This document shows, in pieces, positions 24,442 to 35,226 of a DNA stretch of 64,000 bases. The stretch covers positions 3,224,001 to 3,288,000 of the forward strand of contig OZ251223.1 in assembly GCA_965240325.2 (NCBI GenBank). The letters are read 5' to 3'. Under the pieces are notes generated by a model. It was not told the origin of the DNA. It was given only the letters and a program-made list of their open reading frames with translations, and did no database searches. The DNA is from Rebecca billardiae RCC1528 (taxonomy: Eukaryota > Protista > Haptophyta). The first letter of the stretch is position 1. The number at the start of each line of letters is the position of its first letter. Made by a program: the position numbers and the translations under genes.

Positions 24442-25836
24442 TCATGTGCACGCTCGCGCAATAGCATCGACGACGAGGAGCACACGGCCCCGCGCGTGCT
24501 CGCAGAGCCGGTAGAGCGTGGCTGAATGGCGAAGACGTTCCTCGCTCCACCCGCCACACGTGTCAGAGAAGCGGTGCGCTGCCATCTCGTGGCACTCACC
24601 GATGGCGCCATCGAGGCGGACCGCACTCGCAGGTGCTGCTGCCACTGCGCCATGGGGGGCGACGACCAGCTCACGCGCCTCTGCCTCGGGCAGGCCGTAA
24701 GCACGCGCGATGGACAGCGCGAGCTCATCCGCCTGCTGTGCCGCGCGTACGCGCGCAACGAGCGCCTCGCCATCGCGTGCGTCGCGGGTGCGCGCGAACC
24801 GCTCAGCCAACATGCGCAGAGGGAGGACGCGGCTGTCGATGGCCGACGCGTGCGCCAGGGCGTCCGTCGGCGGAAGGGTGAGCACAGAGGCCGCTGGCGC
24901 GGCATCGGGAGTGGCGCTTGCGCCCTCGAAATCCCCGACCATCCGCTTGTACGACATCGCGGTGTCGCCAAACTGCTGCACATGCGACAGGTTGGTCTCA
25001 GCCCTGGTGCGCACAACCTGCGCGTGCAGAGTCTCGCGCATGGCGCCACGCCGCTCGGCGTAGCGCATCCACGAGACGGAGAACAGATCGCCGAGGCACG
25101 TGCCGACGTGAACGCCGGCGACCACGTCGTACGGCGGGCAGTACGTGCCCCACGACGACTCGCTTGCGTTCGCAGCCGTGACCGCGTACACAGGCAGGCC
25201 CTTGGGCAGCAGCCCCTCGAACATCGACCCACTCTCGCACGTCTCGAGGTAGAACACGAGCTCGGCGAAGAGGCCGCGTGCGTGCGCGTGGACGAGGGCT
25301 GTGGTTAGCTTGCGCGCATGGAGCACACGCATGTCAGGAAATGCGATGAGTCCGACCGCGCCGTGGTCCACGAAGTAGACGAAGACGTTGTCATCCGCTG
25401 TGCTGTTCAGCACGCGCCGGCCGCCAGCAGCGGCCGCATCCCCCGTAAGCACCGCGAGGAAGTTTTGGGGGTTGACCTCGGCTCCAGTGTAGTCTTTGTG
25501 GCAATCAGTGTAGACATCCTCGCCCGCCGGATGGTTGAAGAGCTGGCCGGGAAATGGGTTCTCGCGTGCGTGCGCGACGTCGTCGGCGAGCATCGTGATC
25601 ACGCGCTCGCGCGGGAGGCCGTGCTCACGCAGCAAGCGACATGCGTGACACACGTCGGCCTGGTGGCGGTAATTGATGAAGTCCTTCGAGCCGGCGATCA
25701 CCACAGCCCAGTGCTCCTTCGCCGCCTGTGCTTGCCCAAGAAAACCAAGGGCCACAAGGGCCACCGCCGATACCGACCGAAGCCCAGCTGTACTGCAGCG
25801 CGATGCGGCCGCCGCGCGCGCGATCGCGGCCGCCAT
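24442..25836 (-). CDS. LGMN: Legumain / vacuolar processing enzyme (peptidase C13)
   Basis: WAVVIAGS..NYRHQADVCHA, catalytic DHG and ETCESGSM, CLGDLFSVSW; N-terminal signal-like hydrophobic stretch. ATG chosen at 25836. Confidence 0.93.
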   Translation of the reverse strand: MAAAIARAAAASRCSTAGLRSVSAVALVALGFLGQAQAAKEHWAVVIAGSKDFINYRHQADVCHACRLLREHGLPRERVITMLADDVAHARENPFPGQLFNHPAGEDVYTDCHKDYTGAEVNPQNFLAVLTGDAAAAGGRRVLNSTADDNVFVYFVDHGAVGLIAFPDMRVLHARKLTTALVHAHARGLFAELVFYLETCESGSMFEGLLPKGLPVYAVTAANASESSWGTYCPPYDVVAGVHVGTCLGDLFSVSWMRYAERRGAMRETLHAQVVRTRAETNLSHVQQFGDTAMSYKRMVGDFEGASATPDAAPAASVLTLPPTDALAHASAIDSRVLPLRMLAERFARTRDARDGEALVARVRAAQQADELALSIARAYGLPEAEARELVVAPHGAVAAAPASAVRLDGAIGECHEMAAHRFSDTCGGWSEERLRHSATLYRLCEHARGRVLLVVDAIARACT

Positions 25837-25875
25837 CGCGACTGATCCCCCCGAGTAGTTGTGTTTGTAGTAGTA

Positions 25876-26480
25876 TGGAGCGTTCGTTGGAACTTGACGC
25901 CGGTTTGGCGCCCGCGCGGCGAGGGCGACGACGGGCGTACACGGGGCCCGCGGCGGCGGGAAGCGCGCGGGCGCGGCCGAGAACGGCACGGTCCGGACGC
26001 CTCTCGCCAGCCGCGGACGCGCACCGCGCCTCCTCCTCGCACGCTGCTAACTTGATCCGGGTTAAACGGTGGTTATGCTGCCGACCAGCTCAAGTTCCAC
26101 GGCTGGTCAAGGTTCGGCTTGCGACCTCGCCGCTGGTGCTAGCAAGAAGGTACACGAGCTGGTCGAACTCCCACGCACCCGCTCTGCGCTCGTCGACGCC
26201 CTCTGAAGGTGACTTGGGGTGCATGCGGGGCAGTGGAATGCAGTGGTTCGGCGTTGCCTCTCAGTCGTCCAGCGCGCAGGCCATGTGGCGCGGGTGTGGT
26301 GCGCGCATGGCCCGGTAATTCGGTCGCGGCATGTCTGTCTGGGCTGCCCAAGGCCTGCCGCACCGCGAAGCGAGCGCTCAGGAGCGTGTGCCGACCGTGC
26401 CAGCCCCGCCGAGATGGGGCACTTCGCTGGGAAATGCGGTGTCAAGTTCCAAGCCCCGCCAAGTTCCAACGAGCGCTCCA
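25876..26480. mobile_element. MITE with ~22-bp TIRs and TA flanks
   Basis: TA|TGGAGCGTTCGTTGGAACTTG ... CAAGTTCCAACGAGCGCTCCA|TA, with internal CAAGTTCCA repeats. Confidence 0.72.
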
Positions 26481-26820
26481 TAGCACTTTAGTATGGGGGT
26501 ACCTACGACCGGGAGCAGTACTTACCGCCGCAAGTACGACGACGGCGTCCCACTCAAGTTGTGATAGAATCAGCATTGTCAGGAATACGTCGAATTAGCG
26601 CGAACTTGAAAAGAATACCTAACGTTGATTACCGATCGTTAGACCAGTACCCCCATACCCGGAAAGCGGGTTCGATCGACGCCAGAGCTGCAGCTGGCGA
26701 GCGGCCTGGCGCGGAAGGCAATTGGCATTGGCAAAGCCGGCCGTCTTCCGGCTGGACCTGAACAAGTGGGACGTCCCTGCTGGAGCTGGGAAGCGGCCGA
26801 GCAGGCCGCCGCGGCGCGCT

Positions 26821-29800
26821 ATGCCGTGGCACGTGGGTGGCATGCTCACCGCCCGCGTGAACCTCCTCGTCGTCACCGACCCAGGGCCCGATCCCGATGA
26901 CGTCAAGGCAGCCCTTGTGGCGGCGATGCTGCACAACGCCCGTAAGAGCGGCGTCCGGCTGCGAGGTCTCGTGGCGAATGGGGGCCATCAGCCGCGCGAG
27001 CGAGCGCGGCTTGCGCGAGCCCTCCTCGACCATGTCGGTGCGGGAGACGTGCCCGTCGGGTTCGGTTCGATGGGCAAGCCGCACACCGCCCAGCCGCACG
27101 AGTTCTCGCTGGCGGGGTACGATGCGGTGGATGACAGCCGCCTCCTGAGCGGCGCCGAGCTCATCAGGCGCGCGCTGCGCACGGCACCAAGGCAAAGCCT
27201 CACTGTTGTGCTCATCTCGGGGATGACGGACTTCGCCGACGCGATCCGCGAGGCGCCTGATCTTGTGGTGCGCAAGGTCGCGCACGTGTGCATCCAGGGT
27301 GGCCTCGAGCTGGCTGACTCGAGCCCGCTGGGCCGACGGCTGAGCGGCGTGGGCGCTGCGTACGCGCTCGACACGAGCGTGAACAACCAGTTCGACCCAG
27401 AGTCCGCTGCGCAGGTGTACAGCTTTTGCTTCGAGCGCGGCGTGCGCATGTCCGTCGTCTCGCGCAACGCTGTGCCGCTGCTGCCCATGCAGCTCGCCAA
27501 GTCTTTCGCGATGCGCAGCCGCTGCCCGGTGATGGCGTACCTGAATGCGGCGCAGTCCAAGGGGCTCGAGGGGCTGTGGCGCAAGCTGTGCGCGGGCATA
27601 CTGCCGCCACGCTGTACCAAGCAGTGGTACTTCGAGACGTTCTGCGGCGTCGGCCCCGCGGACTTTGCCACGCGCGGGTACGAGCGGCTGGACGCGGACA
27701 CGGACATTGCACAGCACCTGAACGGCTTCGTCAAACCGTGTGCGCTGCGACGGCCACGCGGCGGGGCGCGGTGTGGCGCTGCGCGCCGGCCCACGGCGCT
27801 GACGGCCTCGCTGCTGCGCGCCCTCGCCCCGCGGCGCGTGCCTCCACGCGCGCCTTGCTCCCGACCGCGCGCGCGGCAGGTACGACGTGGTGGCGCTCAT
27901 GATGGCGCTGCCGCAGGCGGCGCGCGTCGTGCCCCGCGGCGCACACGTCGTCGTGCAGGCGGACGCAGAGGGCGGGCACCGGCTGGTCACGCACCGGCTG
28001 CTACTCGAGAAGCAGCACGCTATTCCCATCCAGCCGGTGCTGCAGCTCCTGCGCGCGACGTACCACGACGTCGTTCTCGCCACGGCCTCCCGCGCCACAG
28101 GCGCCCACCTCGGTCGCAGGGCGGCGCGCGCTCTCGGGCTCAGGCGCTGGTCCAACCTCGAGCTGGAGGAGGCCGTGTCCGAGCCGACGACGGGCGGCAG
28201 CCAGGCGGAGACCGCCTCTGCGGGCCGCTTCCCCTGGCTCGGCGGTCTGCGGGGGTCCTCTGAGTACAGCCCGTCCGCGGAGGCGGGCGTGGACGTGCCC
28301 GGCCGCTCGTTCTCGTCCGCCGTGCAGCGCGGCGCGGACGGGCTGTTGTCGGCGCACGCGCTGTCACAGCTGTGCCAGGACGCGTTCGAGGACGCGCGGA
28401 GTGCGCTGTCGAGCCCGCTCCTCATCATGGGCTTGCTCGCGACCCTTGCGTTCCTGCTGAGCTTCGCCGCGCAGATCTTTGTTATGAGTTTCCGCGCGTT
28501 TGTCCGGCCGCCGCCCGCGTTGGCGCCGGTGATGCGCACGCTGAACGGCGTGCTCACGCGGGCGGCAGCGGTGGGCTTCACCCTCGCGTTCGTCTGCGGC
28601 GGCGTCGCTCTGCAGCCGTCGCGCAGCCACCGCAGCGGCGTGCTCGCGCTCACCTCCGCCATGCTGGTCTTCTCGGGCTACTTCACGTACTTCATGACCA
28701 ACTACGCGATCGGCTTTTGGGGCTTCCGCGAGGCTGTGGGAGGCGGCTTTGACATTTGCCCGGCCGCGCGGGTCGACAGGGGCCTCACCGCACTGGTCGG
28801 GGCGACCCAGTTGCTCCTTGCTTGCGTGTCGGCGGCGCCGCTGCTGCTGCTGAGCGTCGAGCTGCTCGCGCAGCCGCCGCGGTCGCGCGAGCTGCTCCGC
28901 CTGACGTGGACCTGCTTTGGCGCGCGCTCGCTCGTCGCCGGGCTGATCAACGCACTCGTGCTGATCCGTTGTGCCTCCTACTCCGACTTTGAGGGCAGCG
29001 CGGCCTTCCCCATGGGCTGGGTGCTCTGCGCTGTCCAGTGGGGCGCGGCCGTGCTCATGCTGTGGCCGGGCACGCTCTCGACGCGCGAGCGCTTGCAGCT
29101 GAGGCTCGCGACGATGCGCGCAAGCGCCTCCGACATCGCCCCACTCGCCGCGCTGCTTGGGCTCTCCGCTGACGGCGTGCTCGCGCCGCGCCGTGCGGTG
29201 CGCATCGCCCTTGGTCTCTTCGACGCGCCCGAGCTCGGGCCTGACGCGCGCTGCGTGCTCGAGTCCAGGGCGGCGCGTGCGATGGTGGTGGTGGCGACGG
29301 CGGGCGAGGGCAGCGCTCGTGGCGCGGAGGCTGATCTCGAGCTCGCCGTGATCGATCCGATCGAGCCCGCCCCCCACGCCAGCCCAGCTGCGGCGATCGC
29401 ACCTGAGCTCTCGTGGCCGGCCCCTGAGGGCAGCTTCATGCGCGGCGCGGGGCTGCACAGCGAGGTGCGTGCCGAGGCGAGGGTGGGCAAGGCGGCTGCC
29501 TCCCCCGCAGGCGTGCTCAACGCCGAGAGCAAGGAGAGTGGCCGCGCCGCTGCCGACGACCGGCTGCTCCCGACCGCCGACGCGTATGTCGTGCACGCTG
29601 CCGCGGACGACTTTGCTGCTCGCGCGCGCGCGCTCAACCGCTGGGCGGCCGCGTTCGCGAGCGAGCACGGGCGGTCGCCGCGTGTCTGGGTGCAGTGGGA
29701 GCACGCAGACCCGGGCCTCACCCCGGAGGAGAGGCTCGCTCACCTGCCCACGTACCTGGGGCGCTCCCGCCGGCTGCTCCTGCTCGCGGGGCCGCGGCTC

Positions 29801-30145
29801 GCGCTCGAGCTCGAGTGCGCTGTGGCCATGTACGTGTGGCGCGCGACGGGCGGCACGCTCGACGCGGTGGACGTGGTGCCAACGGCCAGCTCGCAGCAGG
29901 AGCACACCGCGGCCGTCGCGTCATTCGACACGTTTGCGGTACTCTTCTCGGCCATGCCGCCGCCCGGTGGCGCGCGGGACCGACTCGTGCGCTGCGTGCA
30001 GCTCGCCACGCCACATCGCTTCAACGAGGTCGTTCGCGCGTACCTGCCCGTGGTCCGAGATGCGTGGGCGGAGCGCGGACTGCACGAAGACGAGGGCGTG
30101 GGTGACGACGTGACGCTGACGGAACGGACTGATCATGATTCATGA
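26821..30145 (+). CDS. Fusion protein: nucleoside-hydrolase-like domain + ~6 TM helices + degenerate TIR-like domain (predicted intron 27738-27879)
   Basis: LLVVTDPGPDPDD resembles the IU-nucleoside hydrolase Asp-rich motif; also ISGMTDFA, IQGG, NNQFDPESA and spliced KPYDVVAL. About six hydrophobic helices lie at ~28420-29065. The C-terminal DAYVVHAAADD...PRVWV...LAHLPTYLGRSRRLLLLAGP has a TIR-like pattern. Confidence 0.75.
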
Positions 30146-30294
30146 CCGCACGCCTGAGACGTGGCTCGTGACGGCACTCCTCACTGGCCTGAGACGCGGC
30201 TCGGAGAGTCGGACAGTAGACGGTCAGACTCAGTAGACGAGTCGTCAGTAGACTCAGTAGTTAACTACAAACTAGTAGACGATCGGCTCGGAGT

Positions 30295-30296
<2 letters not shown>

Positions 30297-30355
<59 letters not shown>
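30297..30355. repeat. (CT)n microsatellite
   Basis: Perfect CT run, degenerate to ~30410. Confidence 0.97.
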
Positions 30356-30356
<1 letters not shown>

Positions 30357-31131
30357 ACTCTCAGTCTCTGGCAACTACTCTCACTCTCTCTCGTCAGTCT
30401 CTCTCTCTCACTGTCAGTCCGTAGATGATTCACGCGTCTGCATCACTTATTCACCGGCTCGGACTGCTCGTCTGCAAACTAAGCTAAGCTATGATGATCC
30501 GATGCAGATCGCCCCCCCCCCCCCCAGAAGGCTGACCACTGAGCGTTCCGAGCGAAAGCCCGGGGCGGGGCGGCGCACCAAAAGGACAGTTCGACAGGAT
30601 TTTATAATGAGGTCGAGGACTTGCTTGGTATAGGTGGATTTAGGTGTGAAAAGCTGCGCGCATGTGAGTACGTACTGCGTATAGTTATCCCTCCGCGTGA
30701 ATAGATTTTTGCAGCTTCGGTCCTTCGCGTTTGTCCACAGCTGGCGCAACGCCATCACTAGTTATTAGTATCACTACCGATCAGCTGCCTGACTGACCGC
30801 TGCTGGGCCTGCAGGGAGTGCCGTAAGCTAGTGGACGTGTGCGTGGTACGCCGTACGACGCGCAATGGTGAATGGGCCATGGGGCTCATCACTATCAGCC
30901 TGCGGCGCAGCAGTCTCGGCCGGGTTATTAGCTTAGCTATGCTACGCGGCTAGTATAAAGTTACCCAGTTATTTGCGTCGTGAGAATTCAGATCAGAATT
31001 CTCAATTATATTCATCCGACAGTAAATCACATTCCGACAGCTGCTGCGATTTACAGCATTTCTTTTATCCTCCCTTTTTTCGCGGCTACTGCCGACTGCC
31101 GCGCGCCCACGTCACCACGTGGTACGCTCGG

Positions 31132-32343
31132 ATGGCCGGCCACAAGCGCGGCGCGCGCGATGCGGTGGAGGCGAGCGGCCGGAGGAACGACTCAGACGAT
31201 TCAGAAGAGGAGATCGAGATCGAGCTGGATGGCTCACTCATCGAGCTCGACTGCGGCTTCCTTGCCCGTGCGTGGGACGGCATGATTGACGATGCACGCA
31301 TGCGCACCCTGGAGGAGGAGGCGCGGATGCTGCCATCGGACACCACCTTCTGGACAACGCCGGATCGTGAGCCGAGCTCTGCGCTAGAGGCGTACGCGCT
31401 CGACGTGTGGCGTTTTCACATGGGCGCAGGCGCCTGCCCGCAGCTGTGCGACCCGCAACGAAGCGGGGTGGAGTTTTGGGTGCAGCGCAGGTCGAGCAGA
31501 CAGGCCCGTGCCGCGCGCGCCATCAATTGGCACTTTGACAAGGACGAGCGGCTGCGCGAGGATCACGGCGTGTTCGTCCACCCCTATCTGTCGACGGTCA
31601 CCTACACGTCGGACCTGAACGGCGCGCCCACGGTCGTCCTGCCTGTGCGGATTTCGTTCGACGGCCAGCAGCCCACGCCAGCACCATCTGGAGTGCCGAC
31701 CACGGGGCGCGGCGTTGTCAGCTTTCCGAAGCGCGGACGCCACCTTGCGTTCAATGGGCGGCTGCTGCATGGCTGCCCAGTCGAGCTTGCGCACGAGCCC
31801 CGCGGCGCATACGAGCGCATGACCATCCTCGTGAACGTGTGGGTGAATCACCGGCCTCGAGATGTGGAGGTGGCGCAGCCGCGGGACCAAGGGCACGGCG
31901 GCGGCAGTCGCGGCCCGGTTGGAGCCAAGCGCGCGCGCGCGCACGCCGCAGAGGCGAACCACGTTGAGCAGTGGCGTGCGCTCACCCTCGAGGGTGCCGC
32001 GCGAGTGCCAATGCACAGCCTCGCTGCGACGAGCAGGGCTGACAGCCGGGCTTTCGCCTGCCCTGTCGGCGATGTTGCCGAGGCGACCGTCGCACTGCCG
32101 GCAAGATCGCTCAAGCGGGTCGTGCGCTCAGCTGTGCGGGCTGTCACTGGCACTTCTCGGGCGAGCCCAGGCAGACATGCCGCGCGCCAGCCGCAGGCGA
32201 AAGACACGCCCGAGCTGAGCTCGCTGGCCGCGGAGATTGAGTGCGAGGTGTGTATGTTGGAGAGCCCCCCATGCGCAAATGATGACGACGACGACGATGG
32301 CGACACCGTCGACGATGGGGATCCGCGGTCATCTGATCTCTGA
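31132..32343 (+). CDS. Putative 2OG-Fe(II) oxygenase superfamily protein
   Basis: GVEFWVQ, WHFDKDE (HxD), LSTVTY, FNGRLLHG (distal His) and RMTILVNVW (2OG-binding Arg). Confidence 0.7.
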   Translation: MAGHKRGARDAVEASGRRNDSDDSEEEIEIELDGSLIELDCGFLARAWDGMIDDARMRTLEEEARMLPSDTTFWTTPDREPSSALEAYALDVWRFHMGAGACPQLCDPQRSGVEFWVQRRSSRQARAARAINWHFDKDERLREDHGVFVHPYLSTVTYTSDLNGAPTVVLPVRISFDGQQPTPAPSGVPTTGRGVVSFPKRGRHLAFNGRLLHGCPVELAHEPRGAYERMTILVNVWVNHRPRDVEVAQPRDQGHGGGSRGPVGAKRARAHAAEANHVEQWRALTLEGAARVPMHSLAATSRADSRAFACPVGDVAEATVALPARSLKRVVRSAVRAVTGTSRASPGRHAARQPQAKDTPELSSLAAEIECEVCMLESPPCANDDDDDDGDTVDDGDPRSSDL

Positions 32344-33684: not shown

Positions 33685-34140
33685 CGGGCTGCGGCCGCCA
33701 CGCGGCGCGCTAGCGCCCGTCGTCCTCTGTTGTCCACAAAACGTCGTCGTCCGAACTCGCCGACTGGGCGCCGATGCGACAGCGCGCCGACAGGATGAGG
33801 ATGTAGTAGGGAATGTAGAGCCCCACTGTCGGTTGGGGAAGGTGTGTATCAAGCGGCATGACTGGTACGTCGCGTCCCGCCGGTCCGGGCGATTTCCTGC
33901 CGTGCCACCTTAAATCATAGAATAATGAGTTACTGTAGGTGAGTAGCCCGTACGTACTAGCCGATCCACCTGCAGAGCCGACGTAGCCGACACGCTCACA
34001 GCCTCACAGTGCGTGAGCGACGAGATTCCCGGCGGAAGCCGCGCGATCCGTCTCCTTCGCCGCGGCGGGCGCGGCCATCGAGCGCGTCGCCTAGTCTGAG
34101 GGTGCGGCGCGGCGGTCGTCGTCGATCAGCTCTCGTCCGC

Positions 34141-35226
34141 ATGGTTCCCGGTGCCGTCGTCGTGGTCGTGCTCATCTCTGCGCTCACGGGGGGCACTGGG
34201 AAACGCTCTTCGGATGGTGTCCCGCCCTCACTCTCGCGCAAGCATGGCCTACCCTGTGACATGTTCTCTGACTCGCCCGTCAACCTCAACGCGACAATTG
34301 CCGTGATGACAGCAGCGGTGCCACCGTATGCGCTGTGCACACGCAACAAGAATCTCGTGGACACTTTCGTGCGCGTGCATGGGAAGTGGCGCGACTGCGA
34401 CGTACTGCCGCGGCTACTTGATCTCGCTGCCGAGACGAAACCGCGCCGGGTCTTCGTCGATGTCGGTGCCAATATCGGTGCGTGCTCAATGCTCATGGCA
34501 GCGCGAGGCGGCATCCGTGTCGTGAGCTTTGAGCCCGAGCCCGACAACTACTACGCGTTGAAAGCGGCCATGGTGGCCAACGATTTTGGCCCAGGCGTGG
34601 ACATGCGCCTGGTCAACGCTGGCGCTTCTGACGCCAGCGCGACCGCAAACATTTACGTGGATCGAATCAATTCTGGCAACTCAATCGTGCGCATGCAGGG
34701 CGAGCCTGCCCCCACACAGCCAGCGCTTGGATCAAACGGTAAGGGGTTCGTACCGCGTGGAACGTCGTCCCAGATCGCGCTCACGACCCTTGACGAAGAA
34801 ATCCACGAGCACGTGCACCTGCTCAAGCTGGACTGCCAGGGATGCGAGTTGCACGCGCTGCGCGGTGCGCGCATGCTCATGCGCACGCATGGCATCGACA
34901 TCATCAAGTTCGAGTTCGCGCCCCACTTCGTGCAGGCGTTTGCCGGTGGAGACGGAACGAGCGCCGAGCAGCTGCTGTACTTGCTCATGGACAACGACTA
35001 CACCCTGTACCGCTGCGGGAAGGGGATGGGCCGCCTGCATCGCAACCAAGTGCGTCCACTCATAGAGCACCTTGCGGGCGACACGAGATTGGAACAGAAG
35101 GACAATGTGCGCAGACCGTCCCGCAATGGCCGTGGCGCACTATACACCGACCTCTATGCTGTCCATGCGCGCCTCGCCTTGTCTGAGATGCGCGTTCTGG
35201 CGGCTCTTGCGCCAAATGTATGCTGA
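34141..35226 (+). CDS. FkbM-family SAM-dependent methyltransferase with N-terminal hydrophobic anchor
   Basis: FVDVGANIG, FEPEPDN and LLKLDCQGCELHALRGA motifs. Confidence 0.88.
   Translation: MVPGAVVVVVLISALTGGTGKRSSDGVPPSLSRKHGLPCDMFSDSPVNLNATIAVMTAAVPPYALCTRNKNLVDTFVRVHGKWRDCDVLPRLLDLAAETKPRRVFVDVGANIGACSMLMAARGGIRVVSFEPEPDNYYALKAAMVANDFGPGVDMRLVNAGASDASATANIYVDRINSGNSIVRMQGEPAPTQPALGSNGKGFVPRGTSSQIALTTLDEEIHEHVHLLKLDCQGCELHALRGARMLMRTHGIDIIKFEFAPHFVQAFAGGDGTSAEQLLYLLMDNDYTLYRCGKGMGRLHRNQVRPLIEHLAGDTRLEQKDNVRRPSRNGRGALYTDLYAVHARLALSEMRVLAALAPNVC

Follow-up and report, generated by a model that had tools for sequence, protein, structure and literature searches.

A duplicated gene family of the haptophyte Rebecca billardiae joins a XopQ/HopQ1-like hydrolase, a predicted membrane block and a degenerate TIR-fold domain

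In this work, we analyzed a 64,000-nucleotide stretch of the genome of the haptophyte Rebecca billardiae RCC1528 (hereafter, the window) and describe within it, at 26821-30145 of the forward strand, a two-exon nuclear gene of this pavlovophyte-type alga, about 1060 codons long. Its product carries an N-terminal hydrolase domain that is, by its sequence, of the XopQ/HopQ1-like type, a block of six predicted membrane helices, and a C-terminal domain with the modelled fold of a TIR domain at whose catalytic position the glutamate (Glu) is replaced. Hydrolases of the XopQ/HopQ1 type have been known for two decades as effectors of plant pathogens, and we know of no function assigned to their eukaryotic relatives, the HopQ1-like proteins (HLPs). 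Our tentative interpretation, which we hold to be possible although somewhat short of an even chance, is that the fusion protein is an enzyme anchored in the membrane, which clears an ADP-ribose signal of the TIR type and is recruited to the makers of that signal by its pseudo-TIR domain.

Gene structure

The window's list of open reading frames (ORFs) places the two halves of the gene in different frames of the forward strand (26722-28263 and 27887-30145), the first ATG of the upstream frame being 26821. A preliminary description made from the sequence had joined them through a single intron that splits a Pro codon, and comparison bears this out (Table 1): (i) removal of the intron joins ...NGFVKP to YDVVALMMALP and so recreates the KPYDV string, which is uninterrupted in the public homologs P0002 and P0003 and, as G(F/Y)VKPYDV(V/L/I)ALM, in seven paralogs of the same genome, and (ii) another paralog (L016, on G000:C29) is interrupted at the same Pro codon, and in identical phase, by a 121-nt intron of its own (GTGAG...CACAG). 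The spliced product would thus comprise 305 + 1 + 754 = 1060 residues, the portion encoded by exon 2 being recovered as the public protein P0001; the two exons were analyzed separately in all searches and in folding. Neither a stop codon nor a frameshift interrupts the approximately 1060 codons, and the GT..AG borders are intact. Outside this genome, P0003 is a single ORF of 1220 codons on a JGI contig, and an MMETSP transcriptome contains a homolog of 1054 residues in which all three parts are present. We consider the gene structure secure. As to the origin of the intron, a mobile insertion was ruled out, given that its 142 nt are not a repeat: elsewhere in the genome they are matched just twice, in part and weakly (74%).

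Table 1. Features of the fusion gene in the window
Feature	Position	Strand	Description
Exon 1	26821..27737	+	Start codon and most of the XopQ/HopQ1-like hydrolase domain; 305 codons plus 2 bases of the split Pro codon
Intron	27738..27879	+	142 nt, GT..AG, phase 2, Pro codon split CC|G
Exon 2	27880..30145	+	End of the hydrolase domain, linker, six predicted membrane helices, linker, TIR-fold domain, stop
TDPGPDPDD, calcium-binding motif DXXXDXDD (HLP type)	26875..26901	+	Aligned with XopQ TDPNKDPDD
SVNNQFD, conserved Asn-Asn..Asp block of the hydrolase fold	27376..27396	+	Aligned with XopQ ..YNNATD
C-terminal part of the hydrolase domain, starting at the active-site Tyr-Asp (YDVVALMMALP)	27881..28090 (end approximate)	+	Alignment of P0003 with XopQ ..LYDPLTLLAALPGT
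Six hydrophobic transmembrane segments	28412-28480, 28550-28618, 28640-28705, 28787-28870, 28910-28972, 29006-29068	+	Kyte-Doolittle
TIR-fold domain of the algal membrane TIR/HET-like family, degenerate at motif positions	29564..30091 (about)	+	AlphaFold2 (AF2) pLDDT 91.9
LELECAVAMYVW, degenerate counterpart of the RLWCxxEL block, Ala at the position of the catalytic Glu	29804..29839	+	Column counts 60/75 E

The N-terminal hydrolase domain

Exon 1 matches the Pfam family PF01156 (IU_nuc_hydro; E 6.4e-12), its 46.2 bits passing the curated cut-off of 34.2. The best NCBIfam model is XopQ (NF041355, E 5.2e-25), reached with 88 bits against the 500 of the equivalog cut-off, which makes the domain a relative and not an ortholog. 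Only three PDB chains were matched at E <= 0.01, all of them XopQ: 7jlu_B (E 5.2e-23, residues 14-285), 4kl0 and 4p5f. By these matches the domain stands nearer to XopQ than to the classical enzymes. The Asp-rich and PYD motifs on which the preliminary description had relied are both present, the YD of the latter at 27881-27886. The aspartates of the former read D-PGP-D-P-DD (26878-26901), which is the DXXXDXDD of HLPs and not the DXDXXXDD of classical nucleoside hydrolases (PMC11685791). The assignment to the nucleoside hydrolases made in the preliminary description holds at the level of the IU_nuc_hydro family, whereas the generic DxDxxxDD type has to be replaced by the XopQ/HopQ1-like (HLP) one. 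Paralogs and homologs share TDPGPDPDD, SxNNxFD and KPYD, the calcium motif being conserved in most of the members checked and SxNNxFD in 13 of 15 homologs, and this copy retains all three intact. The alignment between P0003 and XopQ continues through KPYDVVALLAALP, paired with XopQ LYDPLTLLAALP, so that the first residues of exon 2 form the end of the hydrolase active site; searched alone against the PDB, this tail (the 93-residue start of exon 2) gave no match.

XopQ has been described in a preprint as a specific and efficient hydrolase of 2'-cyclic ADP-ribose (2'cADPR) that showed no nucleoside activity, being inactive on ten nucleosides and nucleotides; the reaction, a calcium-dependent cleavage of 2'cADPR to ADP-ribose (ADPR), is reported for the bacterial XopQ only, and the crystal structure 4p5f contains bound ADPR (bioRxiv 10.64898/2026.06.15.732069). 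By analogy with XopQ, a related molecule may be the substrate of the algal domain. The preliminary description had assigned a glycohydrolase output to this domain; on the same analogy, this output is likely to be the breakdown or binding of a TIR-type signal and not the hydrolysis of nucleosides. In 2018, a phylogeny restricted to the hydrolase domains recognized the algal HLPs, from heterokonts and haptophytes, as a clade of their own; transmembrane segments and fusions are not mentioned in that work (PMC6019455).

The same features bear on a metabolic explanation, according to which the protein would be a membrane-anchored hydrolase for nucleoside or nucleotide salvage, with a TIR fold serving oligomerization or localization and no NAD-derived signaling. 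Membership of the IU nucleoside hydrolase superfamily would suit such an enzyme, as would the loss of the catalytic motif residues from the TIR-like domain (see below), but the motif is that of the HLPs instead of the canonical one, XopQ did not act on any of the ten compounds mentioned above, and a salvage enzyme would not be expected in 57 or more paralogous copies, all of them fused to a fold of the immune type. We regard a purely metabolic role as quite improbable.

The C-terminal TIR-fold domain

The AF2 model of the C-terminal domain, computed with an alignment of 75 sequences, is of high confidence (predicted template modelling score, pTM, 0.86, and the predicted local distance difference test, pLDDT, of Table 1). 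Foldseek returned TIR domains almost exclusively as its best matches, at a modest E of 4e-3. A structural comparison of this alpha/beta domain with VIA-align gave TIR domains for all of the best 50 PDB entries (Z 10.4 to 8.1, 114-146 residues), with RPP1 and RPPT at Z 10.4 (root-mean-square deviation 3.4-3.6 Å, 136-140 residues aligned), RUN1 at Z 10.2 (4.0 Å, 140 residues) and SARM1 at Z about 9. At the sequence level, a profile of five well-aligned homologs (A1) detected 2415 relatives at E <= 0.001 among 1.84 billion cluster representatives and matched this locus with E 2.4e-81. The family alignment (A2, 75 sequences) has the consensus DAFVVHSWxDD..VWxDxxCxD..LP..LLxLxGP....RLWCxxEL and thus recovers the algal TIR-like consensus that the preliminary description had given. 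Scanned one by one against Pfam, the 75 sequences matched TIR_2 in 23 cases (best E 4.1e-5), HET in 17 (weakly, best E 0.0088) and TIR in 4, and in the family profile the RLWCxxEL block aligns with the TIR motifs of TLR15 (..WCQYEL) and SIGIRR. The domain of the present protein (P0001:520-748) matched no Pfam family at E <= 5. Taken together, the modelled structure and the family alignment make the assignment to the TIR fold, within a TIR/HET-like algal family, secure.

This copy is strongly altered at the family motifs. LECAVAM stands where the family has RLWCxxEL, with Ala in the Glu column, so that the absence of the catalytic Glu noted earlier is confirmed, and the W.D..C block reads WVQWEHADP. 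The losses comprise S>A and W>A at the two positions after His, D>Q of WxD, C>H, R>E, W>E and E>A. One further sign of degeneracy that had been listed, VH in place of SH, has to be withdrawn, since this column holds Val more often than any other residue (38 V versus 27 S of 75). Judging by these substitutions, the TIR-like domain is probably catalytically inactive. Drift in a non-functional, or nearly non-functional, paralog of a fast-turnover family would leave a similar trace: only one of the eight family motif positions is kept, so that in degeneracy the copy ranks within the first two or three of 57, and G+C-rich DNA such as this readily yields long open frames by chance. However, the reading frame and intron borders of this copy are intact, as are its three hydrolase motifs; all 11 of the near-invariant core columns of the TIR-like domain (conserved at 90% or more in A2) are kept, and AF2 models that domain with a pLDDT of 92. 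Moreover, in the TIR-like domain even the nearest paralog shares only about 50% identity with this copy, which indicates that the copy is old yet still open. Decay is thus an unlikely explanation.

The membrane block

Six hydrophobic segments lie between the two soluble domains, in agreement with the number proposed previously; they span exon-2 residues 178-396 and are separated by loops of 7-27 residues. AF2, run here with an alignment of four sequences, also gives six long helices, at low confidence (pLDDT 54). A hydropathy scan found no hydrophobic segment in exon 1, and neither an ectodomain nor a signal peptide is evident. The even number of segments places both soluble domains on the same side of the membrane, as had been deduced earlier, and they should both face the cytosol if the predicted topology is right. 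The designation as a receptor finds no support in a protein with such short loops and no ectodomain. The number of segments varies from 4 to 7 in 17 homologs. The sequence of the block is poorly conserved and could be aligned only with three ORFs belonging to two paralogous loci and with a single database protein; searches identified no Pfam or NCBIfam family and no usable match in the ESM Atlas. Helices 3 and 4 are connected by a loop (exon-2 residues 276-302, window about 28706-28786) with a D.C.AA motif, here FDICPAAR, which is invariant in the four alignable membrane blocks and may be a conserved extracytosolic Cys motif.

The constancy of a block of 4-7 segments in the 17 homologs, and its presence in hydrolase-free members too, would be expected if it were itself the output of the protein. 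The XopQ-like domain would then bind a TIR-derived nucleotide, with or without turnover, and gate a six-helix channel or membrane-disrupting effector, much as signal-binding domains are combined with transmembrane effectors in bacterial Thoeris and CBASS. A ligand site would also account for the hydrolase pocket motifs being the most conserved part of the protein, and XopQ binds ADPR in 4p5f. The poor sequence conservation of the block, its low-confidence fold and the lack of any detectable relative of known function argue to the contrary, and the complete set of catalytic motifs favors turnover over mere binding. We consider a sensor-effector of this kind improbable.

The paralog family

Searches of the 72-Mb genome (41 contigs) returned no fewer than 156 matches for the TIR-like profile and 136 for the hydrolase domain. 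Manual pairing of the match tables identified 56 other loci at which a TIR-like match is preceded, on its own strand, by a hydrolase match at a distance of 2-7 kb; together with the present gene these amount to at least 57 hydrolase and TIR-like pairs, several of them within one open frame of 1000-1600 codons. Alignment to the profile of the 56 hydrolase-linked segments and of 40 other TIR-like segments revealed a marked contrast in the RLWCxxEL block: Glu is kept in 24/57 hydrolase-linked against 38/39 hydrolase-free domains, Arg in 21/57 against 37/39, and Trp in 21/57 against 36/39. A maximum-likelihood tree of 80 TIR-like domains, calculated after exclusion of the motif columns, shows just two changes in hydrolase linkage, compared with 10 or more in the Glu state. 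Raw Fisher values on motif retention therefore overstate independence, as the tree provides one or two independent pairs; it also implies that the fusion arose once or twice and then expanded, Glu being lost repeatedly inside the clade. The pattern nevertheless stands: to judge from the sequences, the TIR pocket is under relaxed or altered constraint and the hydrolase pocket has been retained.

In the public set, all 80 hydrolase-free representatives whose upstream part extends to 150 residues or more carry hydrophobic segments there, between 1 and 7 in number and in most cases 4-6. This suggests that the basic module is a multi-pass membrane block plus a TIR-like domain and that the hydrolase is an N-terminal addition. 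The fusion also occurs in Pavlovales sp. CCMP2436, where it is deposited as a hypothetical protein (KAJ1636960.1). The two domains have been joined in both orders, since the TIR-like domain precedes the XopQ-like one in locus L110 (G000:C23:523477-532266) and in the protein P0005 (locus L001:6001-8844); both of these copies retain Glu, P0005 reading RRWCVCEL. Separately, three hydrolase-free TIR-like genes of 284-295 codons lie in mixed orientation within 9 kb at G000:C12:124860-133629 (L081-L083), in what looks like a local tandem cluster of paralogs of the putative signal-making type.

Comparison with known systems

The hydrolase domain shares with XopQ/HopQ1 and with the HLPs of bacteria, fungi, mosses and algae the same subfamily of IU nucleoside hydrolases and the DXXXDXDD, NN..D and YD blocks. 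XopQ and HopQ1, however, are soluble secreted effectors, whereas the algal protein is endogenous, predicted to be polytopic in the membrane, and fused to a TIR fold. With the enzymatic TIR domains of plants (RPP1, RPS4, RUN1), SARM1 and the bacterial Thoeris and SPARTA systems it has the fold in common, and the RLWCxxEL of the family corresponds to their WCxxEL with the catalytic Glu; in contrast to them, this copy carries Ala in place of Glu, has lost the Trp and Arg of the block, has no Pfam TIR match of its own, and is devoid of NB-ARC, LRR, SAM or ARM partner domains. The blocks ..HSW.., W.D..C.D and R.W...E of the family also resemble three blocks of the fungal HET domain (PF06985), which parallels the weak HET matches in 17/75 members; this likeness is one of sequence only, and the present copy, in which the W.D..C block is lost (WVQWEH), has no HET match.

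A further comparison is with the multi-transmembrane TIR proteins expressed by Gephyrocapsa huxleyi during virus infection, which have N-terminal helices followed by a TIR domain with conserved Glu; no further domains are reported for them and nucleoside hydrolases are not mentioned (PMC12489294). They share the basic layout of the hydrolase-free family members. A search of a paper library found no description of a hydrolase-TIR fusion, the reports that come nearest being the HLP phylogeny and that on the G. huxleyi proteins.

Genomic surroundings

Two antisense ORFs of 677 and 513 codons (26629-28662 and 28364-29905, reverse strand), rich in Arg, Ala and Pro, overlap the gene and are most likely a by-product of a G+C content of about 70%; ORF length alone is consequently weak evidence in this genome. 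Directly past 30145 the G+C content falls from about 0.74 to 0.55, and a (CT)n-type microsatellite, translating as SLSLSL..., occupies 30161-30424 just past the stop codon. Upstream, the neighboring ORF at 24445-25989 (reverse strand) encodes a Peptidase C13 domain of the legumain/GPI8 type (Pfam E 5e-94). Downstream, a Pfam scan of the ORF at 30973-32343 (forward strand, 456 codons) gave no match, and that at 34009-35226 (forward strand) contains an FkbM-type methyltransferase domain (E 1.5e-14); neither has an evident link to the fusion gene.

Proposed function

The interpretation that we favor distributes the making and breaking of a signal between members of one family. The hydrolase-free membrane TIR-like paralogs that have kept Glu would make an NAD-derived signal of the ADP-ribose type; the pseudo-TIR domain of the fusion, for which the preliminary description had proposed a scaffold or sensor role, would dock, with no catalysis of its own, onto such TIR assemblies at the membrane; and the XopQ-like domain would hydrolyze the signal locally, which would provide a threshold or an off-switch. 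Such a protein may have a role in immunity. A complex prediction between two pieces of the hydrolase and the TIR-like domain scored 0.00, a value that is neither support nor counter-evidence.

Several points weigh against this interpretation. To our knowledge, there is no enzymology for any algal HLP. The identity between the algal domain and XopQ is about 30%, so that substrate specificity may differ. The intron is well supported, but a search for sequencing runs listed no RNA run and the evidence for splicing is comparative; long open frames do arise by chance in DNA of about 70% G+C. The pronounced degeneracy of the TIR-like motifs in this particular copy has been described above, and the binding of the pseudo-TIR to other TIR-like domains is a proposal of ours. 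In addition, the contrast in Glu retention amounts to one or two independent events and not to 96 independent loci. Finally, 2'cADPR is the substrate of XopQ as reported in a preprint, and an earlier paper, as cited in PMC9963460, gives a different one, with hydrolysis of 2',3'-cAMP.

Significance

XopQ/HopQ1-like hydrolases acquired 2'cADPR as a substrate only in a preprint of 2026. What is new here is the census of the paralogs with its pairing loci, the conservation of the intron, and the difference between the two paralog classes in how often Glu is retained. As a natural fusion that has been duplicated repeatedly, the family constitutes independent "Rosetta stone" evidence that the hydrolase and TIR activities share one pathway, and it points to TIR-type nucleotide signaling in a marine alga. 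Moreover, the retention of Glu in 38/39 hydrolase-free but 24/57 hydrolase-linked domains, together with its loss on many occasions, suggests that attachment of the breaker may leave the TIR domain free to turn into a pure adaptor, which offers a simple and testable model for the origin of pseudo-TIR domains. The gene also supplies cloneable parts for direct assays.

If the proposed separation of makers and breakers is true, eukaryotic HLPs would natively regulate TIR signals, a chemistry that the XopQ/HopQ1 effectors of bacteria would in turn exploit. On a wider scale, and with considerably more doubt than we attach to the function of this single protein, it is tempting to imagine that pavlovophyte haptophytes run an endogenous, membrane-based TIR signaling with a 2'cADPR-like messenger, in which Glu-intact makers would be matched by a large clade of XopQ-type breakers whose TIR domains have repeatedly turned into adaptors.

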